A stretch of 61,032 nt of DNA, taken from Ginglymostoma cirratum. Taxonomy: Eukaryota. Below the pieces are notes generated by a model. That model saw only the letters and a list, made by a program, of their open reading frames with translations. It searched no databases and was not told the origin of the DNA. This document shows positions 662-56,226 of the stretch, one piece after another. Position 1 is the stretch's first letter. The number at the start of each line of letters is the position of its first letter. A program made the translations under genes and the position numbers. Location: assembly GCA_024137785.1 (NCBI GenBank), contig JAHRHZ010000085.1, positions 2,463,456 to 2,524,487 of the forward strand, read 5' to 3'.

Positions 662-705
662 GTTCAACAGAAAATGTAAGAAATCTCACTCAGCACAAAG
701 ATGAG
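662..705 (+). CDS. Gene A short cytoplasmic exon (xSTENVRNLTQHKDE); upstream V/C1/TM exons lie outside the window
   Basis: Acceptor caccag| at 661 (in-frame alternative aacag| at 670), donor gag|gtaagg at 706; phase 1 to 0 fits the next exon; homologous to 44906-44941 (ctcagcacaaagatgag|gtaagg vs ctcagcgtgaagatgag|gtgagg). Confidence 0.7.
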
Positions 706-818
706 GTAAGGCCTTTTGCCATCGACTTTGCTTTGAATTTCATCTGAATGATTCAGACATTGCAATCAAAATAATAAGCTTTTATCTGTGTGTATGAAGT
801 CAAAAATGTTCCTGTCTT

Positions 819-2870
819 GACCTACCTCAACTCCATTTTCTCCCCTTTGGTCTAGGCACACCCCATCTACATCTGGGACACAAACCATGCTCTTTGGAAA
901 CTTTCAGTTCCCTGGTCCCCAGCGCTTCATCTTCACCATGGATGTGCAATCCCAGTACACATCTATTCCCCAGAAAGACGGCCTAACAGGCCCTCAATCT
1001 TTTCCTCTCCAACAGATCCATTCAGCTTCTCCCCACCAATACACTCCTCCATCTCTCCGAACTAGTCCTCACCCTCAATAACTTTTCCTTCAATTCTTCC
1101 TACTTTCTACAAATCCAGGGGGTTGCCATGGGCACATGCATGGGCCCCAACTATGCCTGCCTGTTTGTCGGTTCTGTCGAATAGAATCCCTACAGTGTGG
1201 AGACAGGCCCTTTGGCCCAACAAATCCACACCAACTCTCAGAGCATACCACTCAGATCCATCCACCTCTCACCCACCTCATCTACACATTCCTCAACACG
1301 ATGGGCTATTTAGCATGGCCAATCCACCTAACCTGCACATCTTTTGACTGTGGGAGGAAACCGGAGCACCCGGATGAAACCCACGCTGACACGGGGAGAA
1401 TGTGCAAACTCCACACAGACAGTCGGGCAAGGGTGGAATCAAACCTGGGTTCCTGGAGCTATGAGGCAATGGTGCTAACCACTGAACCACCATGCTGACC
1501 CTGTTCAGTACGGACACTGGTACTGTTCTCCAATGCTTCCGCAGTTACAGCGATGGCAGCATCGGGTCTGCATTCTGCACCCAGGCTGAACTGGAGTAGT
1601 TCATTGACTTCACTAACAACTTCTACCCTGCCCTCACATTCACTTGGTCTTTCTCAGACACCTCCCTTCCCTTTTGTGAGCTCTCCGATTCCATTTCTGG
1701 CAACAGTTTATGGACAAACATCTACTGTCAAAGCACAGATTCTCATACCTTGCTGGATGACACCTCCTCCCATCCTATATCCTTCAAAACACCATCCCAT
1801 TTTCCAAATTCCTTCATCTTTGTTACATCTGGTCTGGCAAGGTCAACTCCCAAGCATCCCGAATGTCCGCCTTTTTCAAACAACACATTTTTTCCCCCTC
1901 TGTCTTCCAGATACCCCTCCACCACACCTCGTCCATTCTCGCTCAACAGCCCTTAACCACTGCCCCCATGCCCAAACATAATAAAGAGAGGCTCCCCCCT
2001 TGTCCGTATTTTCCACTCCACCAGCCTTTGCATCCAACGTATCATACTCAAACACTTCTGCCAACTGCAAATAGACCCCACCAACCAGAACATCTTCCAC
2101 CCCCAACCTCTCTCTGCCTTCCGCAAGGAACATTTCCTACACCACTCCTTAGTTCGCGCTACACTCCCCACCAACCACTCTAACCTGCCCGTTACCTTGC
2201 CCTGTAACTTTAAATGATGTAACACCTGCCCACACATCACCTCCCTCACCTGTACCCAGGGCTGTAACCAGTCCTTCCAGGTGAGACAGAGCTTTACCTG
2301 CATCTCATCTAACCTAGTCTATTGCATCTGCTGTACCCGTTGTGGTCTTCTCTACATCGATGAGACCCAACATAGACCAGGTGATCATTTTCCCAATCAT
2401 CTTCACCTGGACTGTAACGGCGAGCCTAACCTCCTGGTCACTGTCCATTTCTACTCACAGCCCCTTCCCCTAATCCCCTCAGACATGTCTGTCATTGGCC
2501 TCTCCAGTGTCGCAGTGACTCAGAACAGCAACACCTTATCTTCCACCTGGGCACCCTACAGCCTGGAGGACTCAACATTGACTTCTCCAATTTCAAACTT
2601 CCAGCCCCACCTCCTCCCTTTCATTCCACCCTCTGACCCTCCCTTCCAGCCACCAACCGGATTCATCTCTCCCATCGACCAACCAGGTCACACCTACTAC
2701 CAATGTCCACCTATCACCACCATTCTGCTTCCCTCCTCTCCCCCCTCCATTTTATCTGCAGCTCCCCCTCACCCCACATCCAGTTCTGAAGAAGGGTAAT
2801 ACACAAAATGTTGACTTCTCCTTTCCTCCAGATGCTGCCTGGCTTGCTGTGTTTGTCCAGCCTTCCGTTT
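819..2870 (+). mobile_element. Degenerate Penelope-like retroelement (RT + GIY-YIG endonuclease), interrupted by a SINE
   Basis: RT motifs FIFTMDVQSQYTSIP and GVAMGTCMGPNYACLFVG; GIY-YIG-type FTCISSNLVYCICCTRCGLLYIDET; degenerate hammerhead-type tail at ~2786-2812. Confidence 0.85.
1181..1497 (-). mobile_element. HE1-type tRNA-derived SINE (V-SINE)
   Basis: Minus strand has a tRNA-like head (tggttcagtggttagcacc...), core gactgtctgtgtggagtttgcacattctccccgtgtc and tail gggcctgtctccacactgtagggattcta. Confidence 0.9.
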
Positions 2871-2979
2871 GTTTTCCTTGACAAAACTGCAACTTAGCCT
2901 TTAAGATAAAAAGAACAGAGAGAAAGAAATGATTAAATGTATTACAAATGCAACTCTGATACTTGTCATGAATAATTCC

Positions 2980-3580
2980 ATCATTGTACAGTCACCCACG
3001 TTTCAAGGCTCTCTTTCAACAACATTGTTAATTATCTATTTTTTGTGACATGTTACTAGATGGATACATTTCTCTAGTCTGTTCCTCAACATACTGCTCC
3101 AGAAGACTATCCCTAACACACTTTCAAACTCATCCTTCACAGCTTTAGTGCACATTAGTTTGTTGAGCCTTTGTCTTGATTGATTCCAGCCATGATTGTT
3201 GCAAAAACTATGCACCACACATCACAAATAGGTTTATTTATCTATGCCTCACATTACTAGTAGTGTTTGTGGTTTATAAGCAACGATCAATGTTTCCTGC
3301 TGCTTGCTGTTCCTTAGCTCCACCAGAAAAGATTGCTCATTTTGATATTCCAATCTGAGATCCTTATTCACTGATCCCACCCATTACTACGAGCAAAATA
3401 CTAACATATCTTCTCTTCCTCTGTCCATCCTAAATGACATTGAATATTATTGAAAAATCAGTTGTCCTGATTATCCTGCAGTGATGTGTTTGTCATGTCG
3501 ATTAAATCATAGCCATTCATCTCTATTTAATTGTTTTTAATTTTTTTTCTTGTTGCAAGTAATACATGCATTGAATGGAC
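2980..3580 (-). mobile_element. Very old CR1 ORF2 (endonuclease end) fragment
   Basis: Minus strand reads EMNGYDLIDMTNTSLQDNQD, resembling the CR1 APE start GYDxxAITETWLQ. Confidence 0.5.
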
Positions 3581-4374
3581 TGCCCTTGAATTTGTCATCG
3601 TCAACGTGATTCTAAGCTTTGCTAATGCTTACCTTCATTTCCCCTGGTCTTGCCAGGTTGTGAAATCCTGTGTTTCACTAACTTAGGCGCAGAGGTGCAG
3701 ATCAGAAGAGAACGAAAATTCCTAATAATAAAGCACATTGCACAAAATGTCTGAGAGCACATATGTAAATCAAAATTGATTTCTTGTATTTTGTTCTCTG
3801 AATGAAAGGAATACCATTGTTTATCCATTAAATTGTTTTATTGCTCTGTCTGACCACGTTCCCCATTAATCTGTTGCCCGATGTTTCTATCTTAACAAAA
3901 ATCTTCAGACCGAAATTAACAATTTGCTGGAAAATGTTGGTTCGCATCTTACGTACCTTAAAGATTCTGTGCAATTGAATTGCAAGTTCATCTTCACTAA
4001 AAAAAAACTTCACTGTCCCATTTGTCATTATTCAAATGGTGCTATTAAAATAACTATGGAGATCTAATTATTTTATCATTCTTCAACTCACCAATAAACG
4101 ATTGCTTTTATGAGTCTAATTAGCTCATTAATTTAAGCATTAAGCACAAAATATTAGGGAATGCCAGTTTTAAACTAATTAATGCACCAATCAAAAATCG
4201 CGTAGAAGTTTAGCTATTACACGCAGTTTGAATTTGTACTTTTACTTCCAAATGAGGAAACATGCATTTAATAAAATTTATTTATCTTTGTAAAGGAAAT
4301 TCAGGCCAATTCCGTTTAGAAAGTACAAAACACCTTCAACTTGTTATAGGATGTAATGTTGAATGATTTCCATA

Positions 4375-4722
4375 TGAATATGAATGTGGATAGCAAGAAG
4401 CTTTTTCCCAGATTGGGGGATTCAATTACTAGGGGTCACAATTTCAAGGTGAGAAGGAAAAGTTTTAGGGAGATATGCATGGAAAGTTCTTTACGCAGAA
4501 GGTGGTGGGTGCCTGGAACGCGTTGCCAGTGGAGGTGGTAGAGGTGGGCATGATTGCATCATTTAAGATGTAGCTAGACCGATACATGAATGGGCAGGGG
4601 GCAGAGGGACACAGATTCTTGGAAAATAGGTGACAGGTTTAGAAAGAGGATCTGGATCGGTGCAGGCTTGGAGGGCCGAAGGGCCTGTTCCTGTGCTGTA
4701 ATTTTTCTTTGTTCTTTGTTCT
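4375..4722 (+). mobile_element. CR1 LINE 3' fragment
   Basis: LFPRLGDSITRGHNFKVR...; 3' end gggccgaagggcctgttcctgtgctgta followed by a (ttctttg)n tail. Confidence 0.85.
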
Positions 4723-5049
4723 TTTGAATGTTGAAATTGATAATGTTGAATTAATGCAATCATTTTTTGCTCAGGAAACTGAATTTAGCAGGGTTCCTCT
4801 TCTAAGTTTTAACACACTCAAACATGAAGTTTCATAGTTTATGAGCAGGGTTGCATCAGCAACTGAGGAAGCTTTCATTTATGTCGAGTGGAGAGAAGGG
4901 GACTGGATGAAAAAGCTTTAAGCTATTAAGAATATAACAAAGAGGTAGCAGACTCATGGAGACAAAGTAATTACCATTGATTACTGTGGAAAACTGATTC
5001 CTGGCTCCAGAAAATAGAAATTAATGAATGTTAAACCTTAACTTTCCAG

Positions 5050-5160
5050 AGAAAACAAGAAACAGCTGAAGACAGATTAATTTATGCTCATCTTGAACTG
5101 GTCCATTCAAAGGATGCTAAAATTCCTCAGCCACAGGATGAAAAAACAGTGTATGCAGAG
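5050..5160 (+). CDS. Gene A cytoplasmic exon RKQETAEDRLIYAHLELVHSKDAKIPQPQDEKTVYAE (ITIM LIYAHL plus TVYAE)
   Basis: Acceptor tttccag|, donor gag|gtatct, phase 0-0, 111 nt, open frame; paralogous exon at 47399-47507. Confidence 0.85.
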
Positions 5161-5299
5161 GTATCTCTCTGTTCATATGTCTGAATAAAGTAACCATTTT
5201 CTTAATTACAATCATTTGGTTTTGAGATAACATTGAAGAATTCTAAACTTTTAGTGAAATTTGAAACAATAATGAATTACTTTCACTGTTGTTTTACAG

Positions 5300-5428
5300 A
5301 CCAAACATAGCACGAACAAATGCCAGCTGACTTACGCTGCTCTGAATTTGAATGGTCCCAGGTTAACAATGAAGCCAGAACACACAGCTGCAACTCCATT
5401 GTATGCCGCAGTGAAAGCCAGCAGCTAA
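5300..5428 (+). CDS. Gene A terminal coding exon TKHSTNKCQLTYAALNLNGPRLTMKPEHTAATPLYAAVKASS* (ITIM LTYAAL plus PLYAAV)
   Basis: Acceptor ttttacag|, 129 nt to TAA; same length and aligned motifs as 47650-47778. Confidence 0.85.
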   Translation, partial: TKHSTNKCQLTYAALNLNGPRLTMKPEHTAATPLYAAVKASS

Positions 5429-7675: not shown

Positions 7676-8031
7676 AGATAACAAGCATGGGGCTAGATGA
7701 ACACAGCAGCATCATAGGAGCAGGAAAACTTGACGTTTCGGGCCTAAACCCTTCATCAGAAATGGGGGAGGGGAAGAGGGTGGCTCCCTCCCCGCCTCTT
7801 CAACTTGTCTGCCTCCTCTCCACCTATCCTCTCCTCTATCCATCCTCTATCCACCTCCCCCTCTCTCCCTATTTATTTCAGAACCCTCTTCCCCTCCCCC
7901 ATTTCTGATGAAGGGTTTAGGCCCGAAAGGTCAAGTTTTCCTGCTCCTATGATGCTGCTTGACCTGCTGTGTTCATCCAGCCCCATGCTTGTTATCTCGG
8001 ATTCTCCAGCATCTGCAGTACCTTTTATCTC
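7676..8031. mobile_element. Penelope-derived insertion, inverted partial copy + direct copy, 14 bp TSD
   Basis: cagtacagtgtgct at 7662-7675 and 8032-8045; hammerhead cores at 7732-7759 (-) and 7905-7932 (+). Confidence 0.9.
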
Positions 8032-8871
8032 CAGTACAGTGTGCTTTTGTTTTCATAAGATAACACTGTTTAAACCAAACAAATAAAACCATGATCTATC
8101 AACCACACTCCTAACTGGTTTCTGATTTATCTGGTTATAAAACAACATCAGCTGGGATCATCACTGCTACTATAGCAATTTTCCAATCTCAGTATATACA
8201 TCATGTACCCTTAATCTACTGCAGTTATCATTTCTCACAGTTTGGTATTGATGAGGGTGTCCATTGTCATATCTGCTTCCAATCAGTACTCTGGACTCTG
8301 TACTCTTAACTCACTCATAGAAGTATCCTGACTATCAGTTATTTATCTTTGCAGATATAATTTAACAAATTCAGTTTCTGATAACGCATTGTTTTATTTT
8401 TAAAACATCGGAATTGTTTCACCTGTGTTCTGTGTTAAGATGTACATGCCCAAGGAAGTTGTCGTATTTTCTTGAATAAAAATGACTCTTGATGTCTCTG
8501 CATGAGAAAAATATAATGGGGTATTGATAGAAGTGAAATGAGAGAAATGAGTGGATTTACATTAGAAGCAACCATGCTAGTATATGTCTGAATAAGACTT
8601 TAAAAATATCAATTGATTATTTTCAAAAGTGATGGCGCAATTAATGTAGCTTCCCCATGGAGTACAACTTAAAAGGTGACATCTCAGCCAGAATTTAGTG
8701 AAATATTTTTTATTCTGGACCATATTACAAAGCATATTGCACCAATCTAATCTATTGTTATTTTTTTGTGAGGTATTTCACTTATATATAAATACATGTT
8801 ATGATCTCAGAACAGGTATGCTCAAATGCATCCAGTAAGCTGTAATATTAATATTGAAGTAAACATAGGAG

Positions 8872-14358: not shown

Positions 14359-14359
14359 A

Positions 14360-19413: not shown

Positions 19414-21240
19414 CATAAGACCGTAATACCAAAAGATACAGAGGCAGAATTAGACCATTCGACCCATTGAGTCTGTTCTGCCATTCAATTGTGGCTGATA
19501 CGTTTCTAAATGCCAATGTTCTGCTTTCTCCGCATAGCCTTTGATCACCTTACCAATCAAGAACCTATCTATCTTTTTCTTAAATGCACTCAATGACTTG
19601 GCCTCCACAGCACTCTGCAGCAATAAGTTCCACAGATTAACCACACTCTACTGGAGAAATACTTACTTATCTCAATTCTAAAGAGTCATCCTTCAAACCA
19701 GCTGCACTGTCGGCTCCTACTCTCTCCTATGAGTGGAAACTACTTCTCTACATCCACTCTATCTAGGTATCTCAGTAGTATGTAAAGTTCAAAAAGATCC
19801 CTTCATCTGTATAAATTCGTTTGAATTTAGACCCAGCATCCTCAACCACTCCTCATATGACAAGCCTTTCATTCCCGGGATCATTCTTGTCAACCACCTC
19901 TGGAACCTGCCTGACACTAACATATCCTTCCTTAGATACATGGCCCAAAACTGCTGAGGATATTCCCACTGTGATCTGACCAAGCCTCATACAGTCTCTA
20001 GTTTTGTGTTTTAGCCGTCTTGAAATGAATGCAAACAGTGCAGTTGACTCCCTAACCACTGACTGAACCTGCAATGTTAACCTTAAGAGAATCCTGAGCT
20101 AGGACTCCCACGTCTCTTTGTGTCTCAGATTTCTGAAACATTTCACCATTTAGAAAACAGCCTGTGCCTCTATTCTTCTCATCAAAGTGCATAACCTCCC
20201 ACTTTCACACATTGTATTCCATCTGCCACTTCTTTGCATGCTCGCCTAGCACATTTATGTCCTTCTGCAGCCTTCCCATTTCCTCAACACTGCCTGTCCT
20301 TCTACCTACCTTTTTGTCTTCTGCAAAAGTACCAACAATTCCCCCTGTTATTTTGTCTATATGATTAACATATAACATGAATAGCTGCGGTCAAAAACAC
20401 TGACCACAGCAGAGGTCCACGAGTCAGTAGCTACCATTCTGAAAAAGCCACCTTTATCCCCACTCTCTGCCTTTTGCCAGTCAGCCCATCTGCTGCCCAT
20501 GCTAGTGTCTTTCCCTAACACCATGGTTTCTTACTTAGCAGCCTCCTGTGCAGTATCTTGTCAAAGGCCTTCTGGAAACCCAAATAGATCAGCTCCACTG
20601 ATTCTCCTTTGTCGAACTTGCTTGTTACCTCCATGAAGAATTCTAACAGATCTGTCAGGCATGAACTCCCCTTGATGAAGCCATGCTGACTCAACCATAT
20701 TTTACCATGCACTCCCAAGTACTCCACAATCTCATCCTAAATAACGGTCTGTAAAATCTTACCAAACAACAGAGTTCAGGCTGACTGGCTTATAGTTTCC
20801 AATCTTCTGCCCCCTTCACTTTTTAAACAGGGGTGCTCCATTAGCCATTTTCCAGTCCTCTGGGACCCTTCCTGGCTCCAGTGATACCTGAAAGATCACT
20901 AACAATGCCTCTACGATCTCCTCAGCTATTTCGTTCGGAACCCTGGTTTGTAGTCCATCTAGTCTACATTCTTCGTCCACCTTCACAGCTTTCAGTTTCC
21001 CCAGCACCTTCTCCTTATTGATCTCCATTACACTTATCTCTGCCACTTCAGTCTGTTGAAGTAATGGTATGCTACTGGGGTGTTCCACTGTGAAGACAGA
21101 GGCAAAGTACCTATTCAGTTCCTCCTCCATTTCTTGCTGCCCAATACTGCTTCTCCAGCCTCATTTTCAAGGAGTCCAAAACACTTCCCATTCTCTTACC
21201 TTTTCAATATCTGAAAAAAATCTTGTAATCTTCTTTTCTA
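19414..21240 (-). mobile_element. 5'-truncated CR1 LINE (RT domain and 3' end)
   Basis: SQHGFIKGSSCLTDLLEFF...LIYLGFQKAFDKILH; EELNRYFASVFTVE...RVPEDWKMAN. Confidence 0.92.
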
Positions 21241-21244
21241 AAAT

Positions 21245-22700
21245 TGCGGGGAGACAGCATGTGAGGCTGCGAGAGGGTACACGTATGGGGGGATTGGAGA
21301 ATGGGGAGAGGGAGCGTTCAGGGTGAGCCAGGTAGTGAAGTTGGCAGGGTGAGAGGAATATTTGTGAGGGAGCAAGACAGGTCAAAGCAGATGGATCTAG
21401 AGACGATAGTGAGAGGAGTGGGGTCAGGGAGGAGGTGAGGCTGATGAGGAAAAGAAATATGAAATAAGAGGGACACATGAGGAAATGATAGCGATAGAAA
21501 GGGAGAGGGGGTGAATGAAGTTTCTAAATGGTGGAGAGAGATAGGAATAGGTTTGAGGGGGAAATTTGTGTGAGGGAGAAAGAGTGGACGAATGGTAGGA
21601 AATGTGAGGGAAGGGATAGAAGGAAGAGGAGAGGGAGTCAGAGACGGGGACAGCAGTAAGAGGGGAAGAGAGTGAGAGGAAGAGTGAGGGATGGGTCAAG
21701 GGAGAGGGGAATGTGAGAAAAGGAAGAGGAGAGAGAAGGGAAAACATAGGTAGGGATAGAGATTGGTTGGAAGTGAAGATGAGATAGAGGGATAGAGTGA
21801 GGGAGGAATGAAAAGGGGGGAGAGTGCAGATGAGGAAGTGTGGCTGGGGTGTGATGGGGAGGTTGAGAGAGCAAATCAGATGAATAGGATGAGGGTGATA
21901 GAGGGGACAAGTGAGGATTAAAGGAGAGTGAGAGGGTGTGGTGAAGCAACGGACAGAGAGAATGCGAGAAACAGAAAGAGGGTGTGGGAGTGGACAGGAA
22001 GACAGAGAGGGCAACGGAGAGAGTACAAGGAGGAACGGAGAGACAGAGTGAGGAGCAGAGAATAAGAGGGATGGAGGAGGAGGAAGAAGTGGCTGAGAGA
22101 AGCAGGCGGAGTAGTTGAGCAAGGATGAGGGTGAGAGTGCGCAGGAATTGAGGAAGAGAGGTTGGAGAGGTGTGGAGAGTCGGCTTGAGACACAGGGACG
22201 AGTGTTGGGTAGGATTAGGGGAGAGACAAAGAGTGAGGTGTTGAGAGAAGACGAAAATGGGAAAGACAGAATGAGAGTCAAGTAGAGATAGAGGGCAGAG
22301 GATAAAGGAAGTGGAGGGAGTGCAGGCGGGAGAGAGCTTAGGGGTGTTGGAAGAGTGCAATGGATGGGGAGAGGAATGTTGGTGACAGAATGAGTGCATA
22401 TTCGGTACAGAGGGAAAGAGGGAGATAAGACGGCAGGAGAGAGGTGTGGAGAGAGGAAGAAAGCACACGATAGCTCAGATTGTGGGAGAGGCACTGACTG
22501 GCGGGGGAGAGATGGTAGGATACAGTGAGAGAGAAAGGGCAAGAAATAGGAGTGCAGAACAGAGAATAGCAAGAATTGGATGGACAGAGTGTGGGGTTAG
22601 TGAAGGTGATATAGGAAGGAAAAAGGGCCTGGGAAGGTGAGAGGATAAGGAGTCAAGGAAGGGAGAGAGAGGCAGGTGAGGGATAGGCAGGAGGAGAGAT
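21245..22700 (+). repeat. Polypurine (G/A-rich) low-complexity tract
   Basis: About 1.45 kb dominated by G and A with no clear period; it produces the spurious minus-strand L/S/P-rich ORFs. Confidence 0.9.
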
Positions 22701-30981: not shown

Positions 30982-31069
30982 ATGTATGTTCTGCCAGATT
31001 TTCGTTGTCGCTATGTTTGTGAATGGATCACTGTGGAACTTATGTTTTTTTTGTGCATTTCGTATCCAG
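30982..31069 (+). CDS. Candidate leader exon of gene B (MYVLPDFRCRYVCEWITVELMFFLCISYP, or starting at ATG 31042)
   Basis: Open frame ending cca g|gtatat (phase 1) fits the V-exon acceptor ttaacag|tt at 31386. Alternative: in-exon ATG at 31353 (MLNHCTYLLLTVAVCTS). Confidence 0.35.
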
Positions 31070-31386: not shown

Positions 31387-31698
31387 TTGCTGTCTGCACT
31401 TCGGACAACGTTACTCCGGATATTAGGCAAATAAAGACCCTGATAAATACAACAGTCACCCTGCGATGCCCTTTCTCCTTCGAAGTCAACCATTCAAACA
31501 CAAATGTTTTCTGGTTCAGAGAAGGCAGTGAGACGCTTCTAAAGGAAGGCAGCAGAATACTCTTCAATGTAAAGAGAGGGGGAGCCTACCTTCATCTCTT
31601 TAATGTGACTGTTCTGGATGCTGGAACATATTACTGTATCGTCAAAAATCAGCATCAAACGGTCTCTGGGAAACAAGCAACGCAACTTGTTGTTTACG
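31387..31698 (+). CDS. Gene B V-set Ig exon with germline-joined J-like G strand
   Basis: VTLRC, VFWFR, AYLHL, DAGTYYC, SGKQATQLVVY; donor tac g|gttagt, phase 1; no stops. Confidence 0.93.
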
Positions 31699-32396: not shown

Positions 32397-32702
32397 CTTC
32401 ACCAGCTCCACTAAAAATTGTATTGATACGTTCCGAAGATCCTTCATCTGCTTCTTTCAAGCTGCAATGCAGGACATCTGGCTTTTCTCCGGAAGACTTT
32501 AACCTTACTTGGCGCAGAAACGGTACACAAATCTTCACTGGATTTAGAAATGTACACCAGGCAAAAGGCGAGGGACTTTATGAAGTGGTCAGCTCCTTGG
32601 ACGTGCCAAATATACCAGAAAGTGACACAGTCTACCTGTGTCAAGTATATCATGTTTCGAGCTCATTTCCAGTAAATGCCAGCTGCACTCTTACGAAAGA
32701 AG
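32397..32702 (+). CDS. Gene B C1-set Ig exon
   Basis: LQCRTSGFSPEDFNLTWRRNG...GLYEVVSSL...YLCQVYH (C1 signatures); acceptor aaagcag|, donor gaa g|gtaaga, phase 1-1. Confidence 0.93.
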
Positions 32703-33037
32703 GTAAGATTCTATGACACGTTGTACGTTAATCTTTCAGACACCGTTTGAAAAGATTCACGAAGTAGAAAGTGATTACTACAGTCAATTACCTATGATTA
32801 TGTCAATCCTACAATTTGACGCTGTTGTATGGTTAAAGATTTCCTTTCTTCAGCTTATTCTGAAGGTGTTTAGCATGTTGTCATGTGAGGTACTGCCAAA
32901 AGTGAATATTCGTCATTGAGAGGTCCCATAATTTTAATTAAATACACAATGTTACAATTGATTTCCGAACGTACATTCAATGTTAAATTCCATAACTGGA
33001 TCCGTTAAAGAGTGACAAAGAGATCGAGAGGAAAATA

Positions 33038-35772
33038 TGCGGATTGGCCATGCTAACATTGCCTGTAGTGTTCAGGGATGTGTAGATTAGATGGATTATG
33101 GGAGTTATGTACGGACCTCCTAACAGTGGTCAGGACCAGGGGTGCAAGATGCACCGGGAAATAGATAGGGCATGTCAGAAAGGCAAGGTCACGGTGATCA
33201 TGGGGGACTTCAATATGCAGGTGGACTGGGTGAATAATATTGCCGGTGGATCCAAAGAAAGGGAATTCATGGAATGCCTCCAGGATGGCTTTTTGGAACA
33301 GCTTGTGATGGAGCCCACAAGGGAGCAGGCTATTCTGGACTTAGTGCTATGTAATGAGCCAGACTTTATAAAAGATCTTAAAGTAAGGGAACACTTAGGA
33401 GGCAGCGATCATAATATGGTAGAGTTCAGTCTGTGGTTTGAAAGAGAGAAGACAAAATTGGATGTAATGGTGGTACAATTAAATAAAGGTAATTACAGGG
33501 GCATGAGAGAGGAACTGACGAAAATCGTCAGTTGGAAGCAGAGCCTAGCAGGGAAGACAGTAGAGCAACAATGGCAGGAGTTTCTGGGTGCAATTGAGGA
33601 CACAATACAGAGATTCATCCCAAAGAAAAGAAAGATTACCCGGGGGAGGATTAGACAGCCATGGCTGACAAAGGAAGTCAAGAAATGTATCAAAGAAAAA
33701 GAGACAGCCTAAATAGTGGCCAAGAGCACTGGAAAATCAGAAGATTGGGAAGGGTACAAGAACAAACAGAGGATAACAAAGAGAGAAATAAGGAAGGAGA
33801 GGACCGAATATGAAGGTAGGCTAGCCAGTAATATTAGAAATGATAGTAAAAGTTTCTTTCAATACATAAGAAACAAACGAGAGGCAAAAGTAAACACTGG
33901 CTGCTCCAAATTGATGCTGGAAAGCTAGTGATGGGAGATAAGGAAATAGCTGAAGACCTTAAGAAGTATTTTGCGTCAGTCTTCACAGTGGAAGACATGA
34001 GTAATATCCCAACAATTAAGGATAGTCAGGGGGCAGAGTTGAGTATGGTAGGCTTTACAAAAGAGAAGGTGCTAGAAAAGCTAAAAGGTCTAAAAATTGA
34101 TAAATCTCCTGGCCCCGATGGGCTACATCCTAGAGTTCTGAGGGAGGTGGCTGAGGAAATAACGGAGGCTATTGTGATCTTTCACAAGTCACTGGAGTCA
34201 GGGGAAGTCCCAGATGATTGGAAAATCGCTGTTGTAACCCTCTTGTTTAAGAAAGGATCAAGACAAAAAATGGAAAATTATAGGCCGATTCGCCTAACCT
34301 CGGTTGTTGGTAAAATTCTAGAATCTATCGTTAAGGATGAGATTTCTAAATTCTTGGAAGTGCAGGGTCAGATTAGAACAAGTCAGCATAGATTTAGTAA
34401 GGGGAAGCCGTGTCTGACAAACCTGTTAGAATTCTTTGAAGAGGTAACAAGTAGGTTAGACCAGGGGAACCCAGTAGATGTTATCTATCTAGACTTCCAA
34501 AAGGCCTTTGATCAGGTGCTTCACGGGAGGCTGCTGAGGAAGGTGAGGGCCCATGGTGTTTGAGGTGAGTTACTGGCATGGATCGAGGATTGGCTATCTG
34601 ACAGAAGGCAGAGAGTTGGGATAAAAGGCTCTTTTTCAGAATGGCAACTGGTGACAAGTGGTGTCCCGCAGGGTTCAGTGTTGGGGCTGCAGCTGTTCAC
34701 TTTATACATTAATGATCTGGATGAAGGGACTGGGGGCATTCTGGCAAAGTTTGCCGATGATACGAAGTTGGGTGGACAGGCAGGTAGTACGGAGGAGGTG
34801 GGGAGGCTGCAGAACGATTTAGACAGTTTAGGAGAGTGGTCCAGGAAATGGCTGATGAAATTCAAAGTGAGCAAATGTGAGGTCTTGCACTTTGGAAAAA
34901 AGAATACAGGAATGGGCTATTTTCTGAACGGTGAGAAAATTCATAAAGCCGAAGTACAAAGGGATCTGGGAGTGCTAGTACAGGATTCTCTAAAGGTTAA
35001 CTTGCAGGTTGAGTCCGTGATTAAGAAAGCAAATGGAATGTTGTCATTTATCTCAAGAGGGTTGGAATATAAAAGCAGCAATGTGCTTCTGAGACTTTAT
35101 AAAGCTCTCGTTAGGCCCCATTTAGAATACTGTGTCCAATTTTGGGGCCCACACCTTAGGAAGGACATACTGGCACTGGAGCATGTCCAGCGGAGATTCA
35201 CACGGATGATCCCTGGAATAGTAGGCCTAACATAGGATGAACGGCTGAGGATCCTGGGATTGTATTCATTCGAGTTTAGAAGGTTGAGGGGAGATCTAAT
35301 AGAAACTTACAAGATAATGCATGGCTTAGAAAGGGTGGACGCTGGGAAGTTGTTTCCGTTAGGTGGGGATACTGGGACCCGTGGGCACAGCCTTAGAATT
35401 CGAGGGGGTCAATTTAGAACGGAAATGAGGAGACATTTCTTCAGCCAGAGAGTGGTGGGCCTGTGGACTTCATTGCCACGGAGCGCAATGGAGGCCAGGA
35501 CGTTGAATGTCTTCAAGGCAGAGATTGATAAATTCTTGATCTCGCAAGGAATCAAGGGCTCCAGGGAGAGTGCAGGTAAGTGGAGTTGAAATGCCCATCA
35601 GCCATGATTAAATGGCGGAGTGGACTCGATGGGCCGAATGGTCTTACGTCCACTCCTATGTCTTATGGTCTTCTGGTCTTATTATAGGGGGATGGGTCTG
35701 GATGGGATGCTGTAAGGTTGGTGTGGACTTGTTGGGCCGAAGGGCCTGTTTCCACACTGTAGGGATTCTATG
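33038..35772 (+). mobile_element. HE1 SINE 3' part split by a CR1 insertion (33038-33097 and ~35681-35772)
   Basis: attggccatgctaacattgcc...gattagatggattat resumes as attataggggg...ccacactgtagggattcta after the LINE. Confidence 0.75.
33098..35680 (+). mobile_element. 5'-truncated CR1 LINE ORF2 (end of APE, full RT) with few disablements
   Basis: MGDFN, ILDLVL, SDHN (APE); YLDFQKAFD, GVPQGSVLG, KFADDTKL (RT); a few stops and frameshifts; (tcttatgg)n-like tail. Confidence 0.97.
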
Positions 35773-38770: not shown

Positions 38771-39625
38771 CATAGAACATGAGAACATAAGACCTAGGAG
38801 CAGAAGTAGGCCATCTGGCCGCTCGAGCCTTCCCCGCCATTTAATAAGATCATGGTTGATCTTTTTGAGACTCAGCTCCACTTACCCGCCTACTCACCAT
38901 AACCTTTAATTCCTTTACTGTTCAAAAAATTTATCTAGCCTTGCCTTGAAAACATTCAGCGAAGTAGCTTCAACCACTTCACTGAGCAGGGAGTTCCACA
39001 GATTCACAACCTTTTGGGTGAAGAGGTTCCTCCTGACCTCAGTCCTACATCTGCTTCCCTTTATTTTGAGGCGATGCCCTCTAGTCCGAGCTTCACCTGT
39101 TAGTGGAAACAGCCTCCCTGCCCCCACCTTATCTATTCCCTTCATAATCTTATATGTTTCTTTAAAATCTCCCCTCATTCTTCTGAATTCCAGTGAGTAT
39201 AATCCTAACCCACTCAGTCTTTCCTCATAATCCAACCCTCTCAACTCTGGAATCGACCGAGTGAATCCCCTCTGCAACCCCTCCAGTGCTAGTATATCTC
39301 TTCTCAAGTAAGGAGACCAAAACTGCGCACAGTACTCCAGGTGTGGCCTCATCAGGACTCTATACAGCTGCAGCATAACCTCCCTATTTTTAAACTCCAT
39401 CCCTCTAGCAATGGCGGACAAAACTCCATTTGCCTTTTTAATGACCTGCTGCACCTGCAATCCTACTGTTAGCGATTCATGCACAAGGACACCGAAGTCC
39501 CTCTGCACAGCAGAGTGCTGCTATTTTTTATCATTTAAAACGTAGTCCATTTTCCTGTTATTCCTACCAAAATGGATGACCTCACACTTATCAACATTGT
39601 ATTCCATCTGCCAGACCTTTGCCCA
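38771..39625 (-). mobile_element. CR1 3' fragment inserted into the ERV pro-pol region
   Basis: 197 aa ORF with RPHLEYCAQFWSPYLRRDILALEG. Confidence 0.93.
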
Positions 39626-44364: not shown

Positions 44365-44478
44365 ATTTTGCCTTTGAAATCAGTGTTCCTATGGCTGCCG
44401 GTTGCGCGGCTCGTGCACTTGCAATTCTGATATTGACCTTGATGATTGCCAAGGGTTTTCTGTTCTTTATCTCCAAAG
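44365..44478 (+). CDS. Gene B transmembrane exon DFAFEISVPMAAGCAARALAILILTLMIAKGFLFFISK
   Basis: Acceptor attacag|, donor aaa g|gtatga, 114 nt, phase 1-1, compatible with the C1 exon; hydrophobic stretch containing Arg and Lys. Confidence 0.82.
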
Positions 44479-44905
44479 GTATGAACAGGATAGAAATGTC
44501 TATCTGAAATTAACTTAATTGCGAGCTGAATTTCTGAACTGGACAATTTAAATAAATATTTTATGTGAAACCTCTTTCAAATCTTGACATTGCTTCTCAT
44601 CAAATATAAAACAAAAAGATTTGAAGTTTCGCTTTGTGAACTATATCAGTGTAGGTCAAAATTGTATTGCTGAAATTCATTGGTGTCAGAAGTTTCTGTA
44701 GCTTCAATCATGAAAACATAAATTCAAAGCATCTGCGTGTAACATGTAGAGCTGTATTGCAAAACTGTGTTTCCTATTGTACCCTGTTTACAAATATTGA
44801 ATAGCAGTCAAATTGCTTTTGGTTTCTTTGGTTTGCCGATGAGTGCAAATATCAGCCTTTTTTGTTGCTGACTAATAACATTTTTATTTCTCTAATGGGG
44901 GAAAG

Positions 44906-44941
44906 AAAACATCAATAAATTGAACTCAGCGTGAAGATGAG
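44906..44941 (+). pseudogene. Gene B short cytoplasmic exon, damaged (+1 nt, weak acceptor); reads ENINKLNSA*
   Basis: Homologous to 671-705 but 36 vs 35 nt; stops in all three frames; donor gag|gtgagg retained. Confidence 0.7.
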
Positions 44942-46571: not shown

Positions 46572-47310
46572 GATGCTGGAATCTGTGCTGAAACAACAAA
46601 TGCTGGAGATCACAGGGGGTCAGACTGCATCCATGGAGAGAGAGCAAGCTAGCAGAGCTGTGATGAAGAGTCATCTAGTCTGGAAACATTGTATCGGAGA
46701 TAAAAGGTACTGCAGATGCTGGAGAATCCGAGATAACAAGCATGGGGGCTGGATGAACACAGCAGGTCAAGCAGCATCATAGGAGCAGGAAAACTTGACG
46801 TTTCGGGCCTAAACCCTTCATCAGAAATGGGGGAGGGGAAGAGTGTTCTGAAATAAATAGGGAGAGAGGGGGAGGTGGATAGAGGATGGATAGAGGAGAG
46901 GATAGGTGGAGAGGAGGCAGCCTATCGACTAACATCATCCCGCCCCCTTGACCTGTCCGTCCTCCCTAGACTGACCTATCTCCTCCCTACCCCCCTACCT
47001 ACACTCACCTTTAATGGCTCCATCCCCGCCTCTTCGACTTGTCTGCCTCCTCTCCACCTATCCTCTCCTCTATCCATCCTCTATCCGCCTCCCCCTCTCT
47101 CCCTATTTATTTCAGAACCCTCTTCCCCTCCCCCATTTCTGATGAAGGGTTTAGGCCCGAAACATCAAGTTTTCCTGCTCCTATGATGCTGCTTGACCTG
47201 CTGTGTTCATCCAGCCCCATGCTTGTTGTCTGGAAACATTACCTTGCTCTCTGTCTCCATGGGAGTTGTGTGACCCGCTTTCATCTCCAGCATTTGTTGT
47301 TTTCAGTACA
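46572..47310. mobile_element. Older Penelope-derived fold-back repeat with a younger one nested at 46691-47227 (13 bp TSD)
   Basis: gtctggaaacatt at 46678-46690 and 47228-47240; hammerhead cores at 46797-46824 (-) and 47139-47166 (+). Confidence 0.88.
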
Positions 47311-47398
47311 ACAAATAATTGTTCATGTTAAGAACATACACTTGTCTCTTTACTCCAAAAACAAAATAACCAAATGATATTAAATCTTGGCTTTCGAG

Positions 47399-47507
47399 AG
47401 AAAAGGTCAGTTGCCTGACGATAAGCTGCAATATGCTGCTCTTGATCAAGTTGGTTCTGAGCCTGGCATAATGTCAAAACAACAGAAAGAAATCACAATC
47501 TATAGAG
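47399..47507 (+). pseudogene. Gene B ITIM exon, damaged: RKGQLPDDKLQYAALDQVGSEPGIMSKQQKEITIY then frameshift
   Basis: Aligns to 5050-5160; acceptor tttcgag instead of tttccag; 109 vs 111 nt (tat-a-gag vs tat-gca-gag). Confidence 0.8.
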
Positions 47508-47649: not shown

Positions 47650-47778
47650 ACAAAAAACTGCATGACAGACACCAGGCCGACTTCCCTTGCTCTGAAATTC
47701 AATGATTCTAGGACATCATCAAAACCCAAATGCCAAGAAAATAGTCCAGTTTATGCAGCGGTAAAAAGCAGCCACTGA
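47650..47778 (+). pseudogene. Gene B terminal exon TKNCMTDTRPTSLALKFNDSRTSSKPKCQENSPVYAAVKSSH* (ITIM Tyr lost; now out of frame)
   Basis: Acceptor ttttcag|; same length as 5300-5428; LTYAAL corresponds to PTSLAL, PLYAAV to PVYAAV. Confidence 0.8.
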
Positions 47779-51081: not shown

Positions 51082-51478
51082 CTTCTTTCGCAATAGTGTA
51101 ACTGACATTTGCTGGAAATGAGCTTGAAATGTGATGCACTAGACAAGTGTAAACTGTGTCACATTCGACTGCCTCTGACACCTCTAAGGTGCTGACAACC
51201 TCGAAGTCTGTTGGTGTTTCCTTGTTTTTCATTTCTAACTGCAGTCAAGACTTTTCTGAAGAAAGGTCTCGGCCCAAAACATCAGCTTTCCTGCTCCTCT
51301 GATGCTGCTTGGCCTGCTGTGTTCATCCAGCTCCACACCTTGTTATCCAAGGATTTTGTATTCTTTTTGTGTGAAGTAAAATAAATGTCTTTTGGGTAAA
51401 ATGCAGAAGTCCTGCGCTGCAGAATGAAAGAAATGTCTTCTCAATGTACTGGCACAATTTTCAGGGCAGTTGGTGAAT
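51082..51478 (-). pseudogene. Locus C C1 exon (paralog of 32397-32702), disrupted
   Basis: DSPTALKIVPVH*EDISFILQRRTSAFYPKDIYFT...[insert]...FEVVSTLEVSEAVECDTVYTCLVHHISSSFPANVSYTIAKE; stop, first Cys to Arg, frameshift, repeat insertion. Confidence 0.9.
51251..51347 (+). mobile_element. Penelope-derived short repeat inserted in the locus C C1 exon
   Basis: ctgaagaaaggtctcggcccaaaacatcagctttcctgctcc...; flanked by caaga / caagga. Confidence 0.85.
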
Positions 51479-52122: not shown

Positions 52123-52436
52123 CATCTCCAGTAAATTGCACAGCAGTTTCTTTCCCAACCGTTTGATGCTAATACTTGACGACACGGTAATATGTTCCAG
52201 CATCTCGGACAGCCACATTCAGAAGTTTAAGGTAGGGCTGCTCCTCTAACTACAGTGAATAACTTTCTGCTATCCTCCCTGCTGAAAGTTATTATTACCT
52301 TCTTTCCACCAGTCAGCTGCAACATTCGAATGGTCAATTTCAAAGGAGAAAGGACATAGCATGAGAATTGTTGAACATCTCTGCGCGGCTATACGTCGAA
52401 GATCCGGTTTCACTTCGGCTGAAATGCCCACAGCAG
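52123..52436 (-). pseudogene. Locus C V exon (paralog of 31387-31698), disrupted
   Basis: AVGISAEVKPDLRRI...CPFSFEIDHSNVAADWWKEG..(+1)EDSRKLFTVVRGAA(+1)YLKLLNVAVRDAGTYYRVVKY*HQTVGKETAVQF; expected acceptor AG reads CG. Confidence 0.92.
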
Positions 52437-52816
52437 CGATAGGAAACACACTGAGATTAAACAAGAAGGACGGTGTGTCCAAATAACATCCTTGTTTCAG
52501 GTCATTGATGCAACAGCAATTTAGCATGCCTAATTGACTAATTTTTAAACTATTGTCCTCATTGAACGTCATTTTTACTTCCCTGTAACAAAGTGGCAAA
52601 TGAGCTCTTTGAATACTTAACATGCAAAAAAACCCCACGAAAGTAATAAAATTGCGTCTGAATGGTTTTCCAATCAAGCTTTAAATTTTTGTTGCATCTT
52701 GATTATGGACAGTTAATATGTCGTTCAAAAAATGTGTACCTGCACACACAATGCCTCGCGTCCGGATGTCCTGTTGTGAGTAATGCATCGACAGATCGAC
52801 AGTGAAAATCTGAGAC

Positions 52817-52981
52817 AACACAACATGGAACTGGAGGAACACATCAGGTTCAGGCAGCATCAGACGAGCAGAAAAGAAACGTCAACTTCCCTGCTCCTCT
52901 GACATAACCTGACCTGCTGTTTTCCTCCAGCTCCACACTGTGTTGTCTCTGACTCCGGCATCTGCAGTGGTTCCTATCTCC
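52817..52981. mobile_element. Penelope-derived fold-back repeat, 13 bp TSD
   Basis: gaaaatctgagac at 52804-52816 and 52982-52994. Confidence 0.85.
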
Positions 52982-54239
52982 GAAAATCTGAGACTGTCAG
53001 TTATGCCTGTGAACAGCATTGATTATTAACTGCTCGTCTCTCTCTCTAATTTAAGCACGTGTTTGATTGCTGAATTAAAAGAAACGCAGACCTTTTCAAA
53101 TAAAGTCTGCTGTTGTTTTTGCAACCAGAAACTACAACAGCAAAGACTGCACGAGTGAGGATACAGAAAGTACTTCGGAGATTCTGCCAGGATTTGAAAG
53201 TATGGCCGAGGATCGACGAGATGGCTGAAGTCTTTGTCATTGAAACCGAGAAGGCTGAAGTGGAATTTCATTGGAATATACAAAACTGGCCGGGCCGATG
53301 CACAGTGGATGGAGGAAGAGGCCAATGACTCAGGGGTTACACACTTATAGAGAAACAGATTAATCTGGAGATAGTGAAACTATTTATCCCAGAGTGTTGT
53401 AGCGGTCGAGAACCCATTGCCTGAAAGAATGTTAGAAACACCTTACACTCTGTTTTAACTGGATATGCACTTGAAGTACTGTAATCTGTAGTGTTTCACA
53501 TTTAATCCTGGGGAGTGAGATTGGGTTTGGCTGTTCCTTTTTTGGCCGGCACAGACATGTTGCTTCTCTGTGTTGTAAACTTTTTCTAATTTTGTGAACA
53601 ATCAGGTGACTAGTTATCGTAAATTGAAGGACGTGGGGATTTCGGGTGAAACTACAGCTACAGCCGTATTAAAAAGAAGAAAGTGGGGCTCAATTAATAC
53701 CCTCTGGCTCCTATAGGACTGAAAGGACTGAGCTAGAGTGTCGGATTAACCTGTCTGAAATCGTCTTCCTCATTAATTTTCAGCATAATGTCTTTGACTC
53801 TCAGATACTGTCTGTACAAGTCATTCCCGGTGATTCTTCGGTGTGGACCTTTTTACCAATAACTCCCACTGAACATTGTATGTCTGCTAGACGATAATAA
53901 TAAAGTTAATTATTAGTTGGTACGGATTTGACTCTCTTCCTCTTTGTCCCGAGCCAATAATTGTTGTCAAAGGCGGTAACCAGGCAACACCATTTATGCG
54001 AACAAAAAATGCTGGATCAGGCAGCATCCGCGGAGAGAAAGCAAGTAGATGACACTCCATCAGCTCAGAGTTTATGAATAGTCATATCGACTCTAAACTT
54101 GTTGTTTCTCCATGGATGCTGCATGACCGGCTGCGACCTCCAGCATTTTTGTTTTCAACGCAGATTCCAGCATCTGCAGTAGTTTGATCCAAAACCATTT
54201 ATGTCTTTTATTCATGTGCATTCACTGTCTTTGTTAATA

Positions 54240-54779
54240 CCTGCTAATGGCTGTCCAGATCAGTTTGTTTCCTTCTGACTTGTTATTGTCCATGTGGTGA
54301 AATGATCATTTAAGAGATTGTGGTTGCCGATCAAAAGTGTTGCTTTTTCTTGTGAGATGCCATTCTCCTGAGTTTGTTATCGCTGCTGTCATCTCGGTAA
54401 TGGGAAGTGGAAATGTTCCAGAATACTTTGCAAGTGCACCCCTTGGCTGGAAGAGAAACATTCCCAAATCATGATGTGGATCACCCACCTCAGGAGACAG
54501 ATCCTCTGAATTGGTCCTGAATTCCAGTTACATAACCCCTTCCCAGCAGCACATTGGATAGACATGAACCACATTGTCTGCACCCGTTCAAGAAGATGGC
54601 TCACCATCAGTTTCCCGATAATTTCAACATTACAAAGTAAACATTTCATTTTCTTTGTACCAGCACATTACCAACTCATATTTGCTGTTTGAGATGAAGA
54701 CTCATTGCGGGAGTTGGGCGCAGATTCCTAATACATGTTGTCGACACTGACATCGCAAGAAATATCTTCACAGCACCAT
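54240..54779 (-). pseudogene. Possible highly decayed C1 exon of locus D, with a LINE fragment inside
   Basis: Strong acceptor tttcctttattttcag|; fragments AVKIF, MCWYKEN and LK*SFHH (possible CxVxH); donor-like ag|gtatta; position expected downstream of the V relic. Confidence 0.35.
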
Positions 54780-55729
54780 CTGAAAATAAAGGAAATTAAA
54801 ACTTATCAATTCGGGAAGGTAGTAAATGGGACTTGTGTTTTACAGAATGCATGTTGTTTTCTTTTGCTGAGCTGAACAAAGTCCAGACAAGTTTACAATT
54901 GAATGTCCTTTCGATTATTAATTGTTTTGCGAAATTACTGAGAGTGCAAATCATCTTCATTGTTATAAAAATTGATTAAAAGTATGCTTTACTTTTGATT
55001 GAAATGAATGTTGAAGATGATGATGTCCTTATTGTGGATCAAATACATAATGAAAACATTGGCATTTCAAAGTTTCTTAACTTGCGAATCGCACAAGCTT
55101 TCATGTGTACGAGCAGATACCTTATTAAATTTGAAGAACACAAATCATAATTCCACAAAGTTCATCTCTCTGTAACCAGAATAAACAAAATAGCTCCAAC
55201 AAGAATCAAGTCTCTGTGTTCTGTGGTGGACTCGTGTCAGTCATTCCTGTTGTCACATGCACATTATTGAATTGTACTGAGTAAATACACAAATGTTTGT
55301 ATCACAGACACGCTAACTGTTATTTCGGTAAAGTCACTCGATAAATATAACTACCTTAACATAGGATAGAAAACTAATTAGTTGAATTTTGCAAGTTAAA
55401 CGTGTGCATGGAAAACCATTGGAAAGAGCAGACATGGCTCGGCCAATTTCTGGTCTTCTCCTGATCTGGCTGGCATTTGACACCAGATAACCAGATTAAT
55501 GCAGCTGCCTTCTGCCTGTCTTTACCAACTGACCAGCAAACCATTAATTACAAAAATAATTAAGGATTGACAGCAAATATTGAACTGTCTATTGAAGACC
55601 ACTATATATATATATGTGCGTGTGTGTACAGACACATTAAAGAGAATTTTTCAAAGGACAATTGAGGAATGTGAGAATTTATGAAATAACAGTCATAAAC
55701 ACCTGATTCTATCTTCTTTTCATACTTAT

Positions 55730-56033
55730 TCCACACTGTTACAGTGAATTCTGTATGGTTTCCAAAAACAAGGAAACTGCCTTGATGAGATTCTGTGCAA
55801 CAGGCCACTCCTCCTCGTACACTTTCATACGGATTATCTGAAGAAACCAACTAATTTTCTGTCATCTTGCTCCTTGCAGAGATATTGATCATAATCTTGA
55901 TGCCACCAGTATATGTTCAGACCAAGGGTGCCTTGAATGAAAAGAACCAACTGTTGTCAAGACACATTTGAGCAAACATCTGTCCACAGCTTCACACGGG
56001 GCTGAGTCAATTTGCCCGACAGTTCACTGGAGC
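55730..56033 (-). pseudogene. Locus D decayed VJ-type V exon
   Basis: KLTQPRVKL...NIYWWHQD..YL..EQDDRKL..FLQII...GVACCTESHQGSFLVFGNHTEFTVT across frameshifts and stops; donor reads ataagt instead of gtaagt. Confidence 0.7.
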
Positions 56034-56171
56034 CGACAAGAAGAGAAATTCAACACTGAATTATTGAGATGATCTTAAAGGTCAAATAAAACAGAGAGAG
56101 TCAGGTAATCTGCTTTAAAACTGACACCACATTATGTATTAAATGAAATTTAAATAACTGCAGAATTTTAT

Positions 56172-56226
56172 AAGAATGCAATGCGCAAAAGAAACCGGAA
56201 ATAAGAGCCAGAACAGGAAGGTGCAT
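56172..56226 (-). pseudogene. Locus D leader exon candidate MHLPVLALISGFFCALHS
   Basis: Signal-peptide-like, ~140 nt upstream of the V relic; no intact GT donor. Confidence 0.45.

Follow-up and report, generated by a model that had tools for sequence, protein, structure and literature searches.

C1-set domains are rare outside immunoglobulins (Ig), T-cell receptors (TCR) or the major histocompatibility complex (MHC). In the signal-regulatory proteins (SIRPs), an N-terminal V domain is followed by two C1 domains. A relationship of SIRPs to the precursor of the antigen receptors has been proposed, and no SIRP genes are known outside jawed vertebrates (PMC2785349). UrIg and UrIg2 exist as single genes, in linkage with either the MHC or the antigen-receptor complex, and encode 3 to 11 C domains along with a typical VJ domain (PMC12227049). 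The stretch studied here, 61,032 nt of contig JAHRHZ010000085.1 of the shark Ginglymostoma cirratum (the window, by which we mean the whole stretch of DNA analyzed), contains no N runs. It had been predicted to hold four homologous loci, A to D, of a non-rearranging Ig-type receptor family with the plan leader, V, C1, transmembrane (TM) segment and tail. Loci A, B and C are real, lie where they were predicted and score far above chance, whereas locus D is marginal.

We consider it probable that the window is part of a cluster that evolves by birth and death and belongs to an elasmobranch-wide family of SIRP-like, non-rearranging receptors, with A as an inhibitory 3' end, B as a mosaic, C as a dead copy and D as a doubtful one. 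Its contents amount to an intact inhibitory tail, a mosaic gene in compromised condition and one or two copies that are dead. Being mostly broken, the window adds little in the way of functional material, and what it shows is how such a cluster evolves, by duplication, reshuffling of modules, transposon insertion and decay. New in this analysis are the apparent mosaic structure of gene B and the conserved frameshift in its tail. Exons were searched singly; the frames from leader to V were checked by a local script only, additional exons were sought with family hidden Markov models (HMMs) in all six frames of the window, and the AlphaFold model was made on the zebra-shark protein P0154, which stands in for the window genes.

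The elasmobranch family and its likeness to SIRPs

A search of 1.84 billion representative proteins with the V exon of B was swamped by giant multi-Ig proteins, and four short proteins were matched from end to end (P0028, P0029, P0059 and P0070; three from horn shark and one from bamboo shark), all of them named 'uncharacterized'. With one short relative as the query, 18 proteins were obtained, from the sharks Heterodontus, Stegostoma, Hemiscyllium, Heptranchias, Scyliorhinus, Chiloscyllium, Rhincodon and Cetorhinus and from the rays Pristis, Hemitrygon and Mobula; rodent SIRP-alpha was the only non-elasmobranch match in this search (E 1.5e-11). The elasmobranch matches amounted to 18 + 9, and a profile search over the best 8000 candidates of a large protein collection added elasmobranch members only. 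For each species, the placement of members on an equal-sized contig suggests clustering.

The original prediction had called the cluster hidden, which does not hold for other species, where RefSeq already models relatives, several of them as SIRP-alpha-like or SIRP-beta-1-like. The automatic names include 'tyrosine-protein phosphatase non-receptor type substrate 1-like', which is equivalent to SIRP-alpha-like, 'signal-regulatory protein beta-1-like', 'NCR3LG1-like' (two members) and 'uncharacterized'. No published description of this elasmobranch family was found in the full-text literature, whose coverage leaves out most subscription journals; it did yield papers on UrIg and UrIg2 (PMC12227049, PMC10751288) and on the structure of SIRP-alpha (PMC2785349).

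According to the alignment, members start with a leader of 19 residues, continue with a V-like domain, whose consensus G strand is GxGTGxQLxVYA, and a single C1 domain, and finish in one of two ways. In the first, a TM segment bearing a conserved Lys (..IVKG.LFIISKG) close to the cytoplasm leads into a tail built from repeats, each made up of LTYAAL, about 22 residues and then YAE or YAAV. The second ending is an Arg-containing TM segment with a short tail (P0156, P0070 and P0158). The Lys was considered as an activating mark of the DAP12 type and rejected, because members bearing immunoreceptor tyrosine-based inhibitory motifs (ITIMs) carry it too. Some members are near-twins that differ mainly in the tail: Heterodontus P0029, with an ITIM tail, and P0028, with a short tail, are 87% identical, and the V domains of P0153 and P0157 of the zebra shark Stegostoma are identical. 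The idea of a multigene, non-rearranging family of elasmobranch receptors is supported, and at the level of the family these near-identical ectodomains with ITIM or short tails also fit the label of paired receptors that had been proposed, any pairing with an adaptor being putative. In Heterodontus P0152/P0059 the two-exon tyrosine module of the tail is duplicated in tandem, giving eight tyrosine motifs, and the isoform P0059 skips C1.

SIRPs appear to be the nearest known family, both in sequence and in the way the proteins would work, which agrees with the SIRP-like character first assigned to the cluster. BLASTP with rodent SIRP-alpha aligned the F-G strands of V and the start of C1 colinearly (E 8e-9), and hhalign of the family profile against domains d1-d2 of SIRP-alpha gave a probability of 98.3%, the alignment leaving about 15 SIRP residues of the C'-D region without a counterpart in the shark V. 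In a profile search of the PDB, SIRP-alpha was the best V-C1 family (2.7e-19, 72.7 bits), followed by UrIg2 (1.4e-18) and SIRP-gamma, with Ig light chains (about 1e-15) and B7-H6 (3e-14, 56 bits) at lower ranks. The tail of A also matches that of SIRP-alpha, as described below. The alternative label of a proto-antigen-receptor-like family gained no specific evidence beyond a generic C1 similarity to UrIg2.

The likeness extends to organization. Like SIRPs, the family has a non-rearranging N-terminal V-type domain encoded with its G strand in a single exon and placed directly before C1, a tail whose four 'YA' tyrosines form two pairs with a spacing of about 22-26 residues (found in A), inhibitory and short-tailed members with near-identical ectodomains, a clustered multigene arrangement, and SIRP names in RefSeq. 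In contrast to the V-C1-C1 order of SIRPs, only one C1 separates V from TM, both in the window and in every full-length relative. The d1 domain of SIRPs is a full-size V-set domain with strands C' and C'', whereas the shark V is shortened; in the AlphaFold model of P0154 it lacks C'' and has a predicted local distance difference test (pLDDT) score of 54-81, against 80-95 for C1. Furthermore, only Y1 and Y3 of the shark tail fit the ITIM consensus, and the TM Lys is found in inhibitory members also. As two architectural features of SIRPs (two C1 domains and a full V) are missing, we call the family SIRP-like and not SIRP.

A tentative and on balance doubtful extension is that the elasmobranch V-C1 family represents a sister or ancestral form of SIRPs, with one C1, a G strand resembling J and a 'YA' tail built from repeats, and that the window displays paired-receptor evolution in the act. 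If this were true, the SIRP lineage would go back to the base of the jawed vertebrates, and an ectodomain of the inhibitory lineage would stand upstream of a TM module whose lineage lost its tails differently in several sharks, through an old frameshift in zebra shark and here, to which the loss of a splice site and a newly gained stop have been added here. A large expressed SIRP-like V-C1 family in sharks and rays would provide an early-branching reference for the origins of SIRPs, as well as a natural series of inhibitory and tail-lost members for comparative immunology.

A second shark subfamily (P0163, P0164, P0167, P0168 and P0169) is more conserved, shares about 30% identity with the main family and, in the sharks searched, is represented by one or two models per species. 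Its J motif is the canonical GNGTxTRLLV, its TM segment is uncharged, and its tail contains M.YT..DF and.IYATP; it may stand closer to true SIRP-alpha than does the expanded family.

Genes A, B and C and the probable composite make-up of B

Gene A (662-5428, plus strand) is present as three cytoplasmic exons, all open and with canonical splice sites. The first (662..705; 44 nt, phase 1 to 0, AG/GT sites) encodes (G)STENVRNLTQHKDE and matches residues 282-300 of P0154. The second (5050..5160; 111 nt, AG/GT sites) encodes RKQETAEDRLIYAHLELVHSKDAKIPQPQDEKTVYAE, in which the canonical ITIM LIYAHL is followed by TVYAE, and is 71% identical to the P0154 tail. The last (5300..5428; 129 nt) encodes TKHSTNKCQLTYAALNLNGPRLTMKPEHTAATPLYAAVKASS and a stop, with the ITIM LTYAAL and then PLYAAV; it is 62% identical to the P0154 C-terminus and scores 37 bits with the tail HMM. 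The tyrosine motifs of the spliced tail are LIYAHL, TVYAET, LTYAAL and PLYAAV, with a spacing of 22 residues within each pair, so that two canonical ITIMs (Y1 and Y3) are each followed by YAxx about 22 residues on, while Y2 and Y4 lie off the strict consensus. The second of these motifs had been read as TVYAEV, but splicing places T after TVYAE. Residues 472-502 of SIRP-alpha align with exon 5050-5160 at 42% over 31 aa (E 5e-5 in a single comparison) with the pattern ED.L.YA.L..VH, the aligned letters being EDRLIYAHLELVH-SKDAKIPQPQDEKTVYA against EDTLTYADLDMVHLSRAQPAPKPEPSFSEYA, and Ala follows all four tyrosines in both tails.

With three intact exons and two canonical ITIMs, A appears to be what it was taken for, the intact 3' end of an inhibitory member, and its counterpart would be the tail of zebra-shark LOC125459911 (P0154). 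The prediction could have failed if A-type tails were spliced to an unrelated ectodomain; the zebra-shark RefSeq model P0154 joins an A-type tail to an ectodomain of the family. If A works like SIRP-alpha, ligand binding would lead to tyrosine phosphorylation and recruitment of SHP-1/SHP-2, by which activation would be damped.

The cytoplasmic exons measure 44, 111 and 129 nt in A, and 44 and 109 nt with the same last exon in B. Every splice phase is identical in the two tails, their last introns are of similar length (139 vs 142 nt), and the similarity is detected by both tblastx and blastn, which bears out the proposed link between A and B through cytoplasmic exon sizes, phases and motifs.

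The leader exon of gene B (31013..31069, plus strand) contains a run of eight T (T8) at 31045-31052. Read from the first ATG (31013), it is out of frame with V and meets a stop within the V exon; the second ATG (31042) is in frame and gives MFFLCISYP joined to V. Leaders of expressed paralogues have T6 or TTTTCTG in place of T8 and encode the in-frame family leader MFVNGSLWNLCFLCISYP joined to V, the B leader having 2 extra bases. The V-like exon (31387..31698, plus strand; phase 1/1, AG/GT) matches the Pfam models ig, Ig_3, V-set and I-set with 31-40 bits and the family HMM with 134.8 bits, has 57 residues between its two Cys, and is 72% identical to P0154, with which it groups in the tree (support 100/98). 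Its G strand, SGKQATQLVV, lies within the V exon directly before the GT donor (the exon runs to ..QLVVY), so that B can do without rearrangement. Ig and TCR genes have V and J as separate segments, which are not seen here, the G strand being contiguous with V and spliced to C1; recombination signal sequences were not searched for. The reading of this exon as a single-exon VJ holds for the family consensus (GxGT.QL.V), but in B the motif is degenerate, and the V is short, is modelled without C'' and looks I-set-like.

The C1-set exon of B (32397..32703, plus strand; phase 1 at both ends, AG/GT) has the motif YLCQVYH and matches Pfam C1-set with 39 bits (cut-off 21) and the family HMM with about 135 bits; it is 86% identical to P0154 (tree support 100/99) and also matches a butyrophilin Ig-C model. 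P0170, a EukProt model (g24077.t1) of another organism, contains a C1 exon 87% identical to that of B, frameshifted and fused to sequence resembling a long interspersed nuclear element (LINE); it aligns to 32495-32702 and 33508-33651 and may be a decayed counterpart of the B ectodomain in a relative.

RNA was examined in one run containing 75% of the sampled words of 30950-32750 and in three further runs of the same organism with small shares, and the contigs were aligned to 30500-33100. GT..AG joints connect 31069 to 31387 (one run) and 31698 to 32397 (three runs), which means that the runs contain spliced RNA and that the predicted exon borders of B are right. Most contigs differ from the window by 1-10%, and up to eight distinct contigs cover the C1 exon, which indicates that several paralogues are expressed. 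The spliced leader contigs carry T6 or TTTTCTG together with other differences, and hence come from paralogues or alleles; among the contigs none was identified that was shown to carry T8, and the T run in the B leader may be an assembly error. At position 32487, B has C (Ser, giving FSP), whereas nearly all of the contig depth in the four runs has A (Tyr, giving the FYP conserved in C1). Synonymous and nonsynonymous differences between B and one expressed paralogue stand at 11:13.

The TM exon of B (44365..44478, plus strand; AG/GT sites) encodes DFAFEISVPMAAGCAARALAILILTLMIAKGFLFFISK, with the conserved Lys of the family, and scores 47 bits with the TM HMM; it is 80% identical to P0157 vs 54-56% to P0154. 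Downstream lies a defective small cytoplasmic exon (44898..44941, plus strand), with weak HMM and tblastn matches, a TG acceptor in place of AG and an in-frame TGA (GGKKTSIN*TQREDE). The next cytoplasmic exon (47399..47507, plus strand; 109 nt, 2 nt below that of A) contains LQYAAL, ends in ..ITIYR and is 71% identical to P0153 and 63% to P0157; before the gt donor it ends in TAT AGA G, vs TAT GCA GAG in A. Through this loss of 2 nt the last exon (47650..47778, plus strand) is read as DKKLHDRHQADFPCSEIQ and a stop at 47703-47705, while the old frame stays open to 47778 with PTSLAL, in which the Tyr is lost, and PVYAAV. The TM exon and both of these tail exons keep AG/GT sites; identity of the tail exons to P0157/P0153 is 63-71% and 65%, and that of the TM and tail exons to P0154 is 36-56%. 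The C-terminus of P0157, DKTKHDRLQTDLPCSEIQ followed by a stop, agrees with the shifted frame of B. Since the shifted C-terminus is common to the two, the frameshift is older than the split of the two species, and it represents a conserved truncated-tail state and not random damage. Two lesions of the small exon of B, the TG acceptor and the TGA where relatives have Pro, are absent from the P0157 protein.

From the identities, the tblastn matches, the trees and the shifted C-terminus common with P0157, B appears to be a mosaic, with leader, V and C1 of the LOC125459911 (P0154) lineage and TM and tail of the SIRP-beta-1-like (P0157) lineage. The TM/tail module of the P0157 lineage would already have contained the old 2-nt frameshift, with loss of the acceptor and gain of the stop following later here. 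Neither a second C1 exon nor a TM exon of B's own lineage was found in the window with the family HMMs in six frames. B had been described as having an intact ectodomain and TM with a damaged tail; the V, C1 and TM exons are indeed open and the tail is damaged, but the leader is frameshifted by T8. With this leader frameshift in addition to the tail lesions, B is more likely a copy in decay and could at most be a receptor without a tail.

Locus C is on the minus strand. Its V exon (52133..52437) has a frameshift, a stop and a change of the second Cys to Arg, and groups with P0153/P0157 (support 98/95). In its C1 exon (51083..51476) there is a stop, the first Cys is changed to Arg, the Trp is lost, and the exon is split by a 98-bp copy of the window's common repeat at 51254-51351. 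The HMM matches of C on this strand reach 44.6 + 32.5 bits for V and 41.8 + 15.1 bits for C1, and over V exon, intron and C1 exon alike it runs colinear with B, with a nucleotide identity of 67-72%. In all, C has two stops, at least one frameshift, one canonical Cys lost per domain and the C1 Trp lost. It is a real, much decayed pseudogene, probably the dead ectodomain of the P0157 lineage. The original prediction was right about the pseudogene and its strand, but with these lesions and the repeat insert it is not recent. The proposed link of B, C and D through their Ig domains obscures the mosaic: C belongs with the lineage of the TM and tail of B, not with that of the B ectodomain.

Compared with the zebra-shark models, LOC125459911 (P0154) is the counterpart of the B V and C1 domains (72% and 86%) and of the A tail (62-71%), and P0157 ('SIRP beta-1-like') and P0153 ('PTPNS1-like') are those of the B TM and tail (63-80%) and of the C ectodomain. 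The window differs in that these modules have been recombined there, and several of them are broken.

Competing explanations

Several observations weigh against reading the window as a cluster of SIRP-like receptors with an inhibitory A and a mosaic B. The C1 and TM exons of B lie 11.7 kb apart, with a splice joint that is predicted only; no spliced RNA contig identical to B was seen in the runs examined over 30500-33100, and the contigs identical to B come from one run and also cover introns. The TM exon and ectodomain of A lie outside the window, according to the six-frame HMM scan, and inhibitory signalling is read from its motifs only. As regards the family, the PDB score of SIRP-alpha sums two stretches and is not far above those of Ig light chains and B7-H6. 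Foldseek placed PD-L1 first and B7-H6 at ranks 2 and 6 (26-27% identity), with nearly equal scores for Fab light chains, so that structure does not discriminate among the PD-L1, B7-H6 and light-chain families. Against orthology with SIRPs stand the single C1 in place of two and a V about 15 residues shorter than d1 of SIRP-alpha.

A plausible explanation, if somewhat short of probable, is that the TM and tail exons are not those of B and form, together with C, one dead P0157 ortholog broken by an inversion of about 44.3-47.8 kb, the leader, V and C1 of B being a partial duplicate without TM. The grouping of the C V exon with P0153/P0157 and the 63-80% identity of TM and tail to P0157/P0153 are in keeping with this, and a C-type ectodomain and a B-type TM are found within one gene model in zebra shark (Stegostoma), epaulette shark (Hemiscyllium, P0155) and whale shark (Rhincodon, P0162). 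Lesions are present in both ectodomain exons, in the small cytoplasmic exon and in the first large tail exon (t1), the TM exon alone being clean; reversal of the block would give a normal 3.3-kb intron from C1 to TM, and the scan for TM and tail exons found none on the strand of C. However, inverted repeats flanking the supposed breakpoints, around 44.3 and 47.8 kb, were not found, the TM exon is the sole one downstream of the B C1 on the same strand, and after subtraction of the LINE and of an insert resembling an endogenous retrovirus the gap between C1 and TM would shrink to about 3.6 kb, a normal intron; the AG/GT sites retained by the TM exon and both tail exons argue in the same direction. 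A reversal between a 77-nt repeat pair at 46572 and 54098 was also tried and rejected, as no coherent gene results. It is also possible, but we think unlikely, that B is a working tail-less receptor, of decoy or activating type, produced by exon shuffling, with the second ATG, V, C1 and the Lys-bearing TM, and serving as the short-tailed partner of the inhibitory A. Good splice sites border its V, C1 and TM exons, all of them open, the ATG at 31042 restores the frame, short-tailed members occur naturally (P0028, P0162 and the truncated P0157), the tail frameshift is kept in two species, and the 11:13 ratio is unlike free decay. Yet the leader is frameshifted relative to every expressed paralogue, FYP has become FSP, the J motif is degenerate, the Lys is no activating mark, being shared with ITIM-bearing members, and no spliced contig matched B exactly.

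That the family is one of ligands like B7-H6 (NCR3LG1) or other B7 proteins, and not of SIRP-like receptors, seems improbable to us: the Foldseek ranking, the two NCR3LG1-like names in RefSeq, the architecture of V, a single C1 and TM, as in B7-H6, and the match of the C1 exon to the butyrophilin Ig-C model are in its favour, but the profile score is lower for B7-H6 (56 bits) than for SIRP-alpha (72.7 bits), the tail repeats match the ITIM pair of SIRP-alpha and not B7-H6, and ITIM-paired tails with short-tailed twins differing in the tail only are typical of paired receptors. Still less credence attaches to a surviving proto-antigen-receptor lineage, UrIg-like or PRARP-like and closer to Ig and TCR than SIRPs are. 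UrIg and UrIg2 resemble the family in being elasmobranch and non-rearranging, with a single-exon V that includes the G strand and with C1-set domains; UrIg2 reached 1.4e-18 in the PDB profile search, the light chains reached about 1e-15 over V and C together, and the family consensus has a GxGT J-like motif. The UrIg2 match is, however, of one C1 domain only (profile positions 143-210), and the 3 to 11 C domains of UrIg and UrIg2 and their typical VJ (PMC12227049) contrast with the solitary C1 and shortened V of the shark family, which has ITIM tails in addition and forms a large multigene cluster. In single-sequence PDB searches with the V domain, moreover, I-set proteins came first.

Locus D, transposons and repeats

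Locus D (55690..56013, minus strand) is a possible relic of a V exon, marginal in score, with a V HMM match of 1.7 bits at 55849-56013. It reads IYWWHQD..YL..QDDRKLV against VYWWRDGNKTFLQEDSRKLF of the family, and an ESGVYDC motif follows about 140 nt beyond the HMM match in a different frame. The same score was reached by one of 60 composition-preserving shuffles of the window, and no C1 relic was found beside it. D had been taken for an old relic, for which the evidence is borderline; it is a possible, doubtful older relic. The proposal of four homologous loci accordingly stands for A, B and C and is left borderline for D.

Between the C1 and TM exons of B lies a LINE (33098..35589, plus strand) with endonuclease and reverse transcriptase open reading frames (ORFs; Pfam Exo_endo_phos_2 and RVT_1). 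Of three other ORFs, at 38915-39508 (minus), 29495-29947 (plus) and 26082-26417 (plus), two have the LINE C-terminal motif HLEYC.QFW but no Pfam match. Overlapping ORFs of up to 382 aa at 21167-22572 (minus) are of Ser/Pro/Leu-rich low complexity and strongly GC-skewed, and this is probably a simple-repeat region and no gene.

A short repeat is present in many copies with 75-99% identity, at 1-255, 7676-8042, 46686-46920, 47015-47231, 51254-51351, 52876-52983, 57082-57215 and 60871-60985. In the intron before the B tail exon, two head-to-head copies of the commonest young repeat of the window make up a foldback of about 700 bp (46591-47302), whose arms at 46745-46920 and 47043-47218 are 98% complementary and whose outer arms are 83% complementary.

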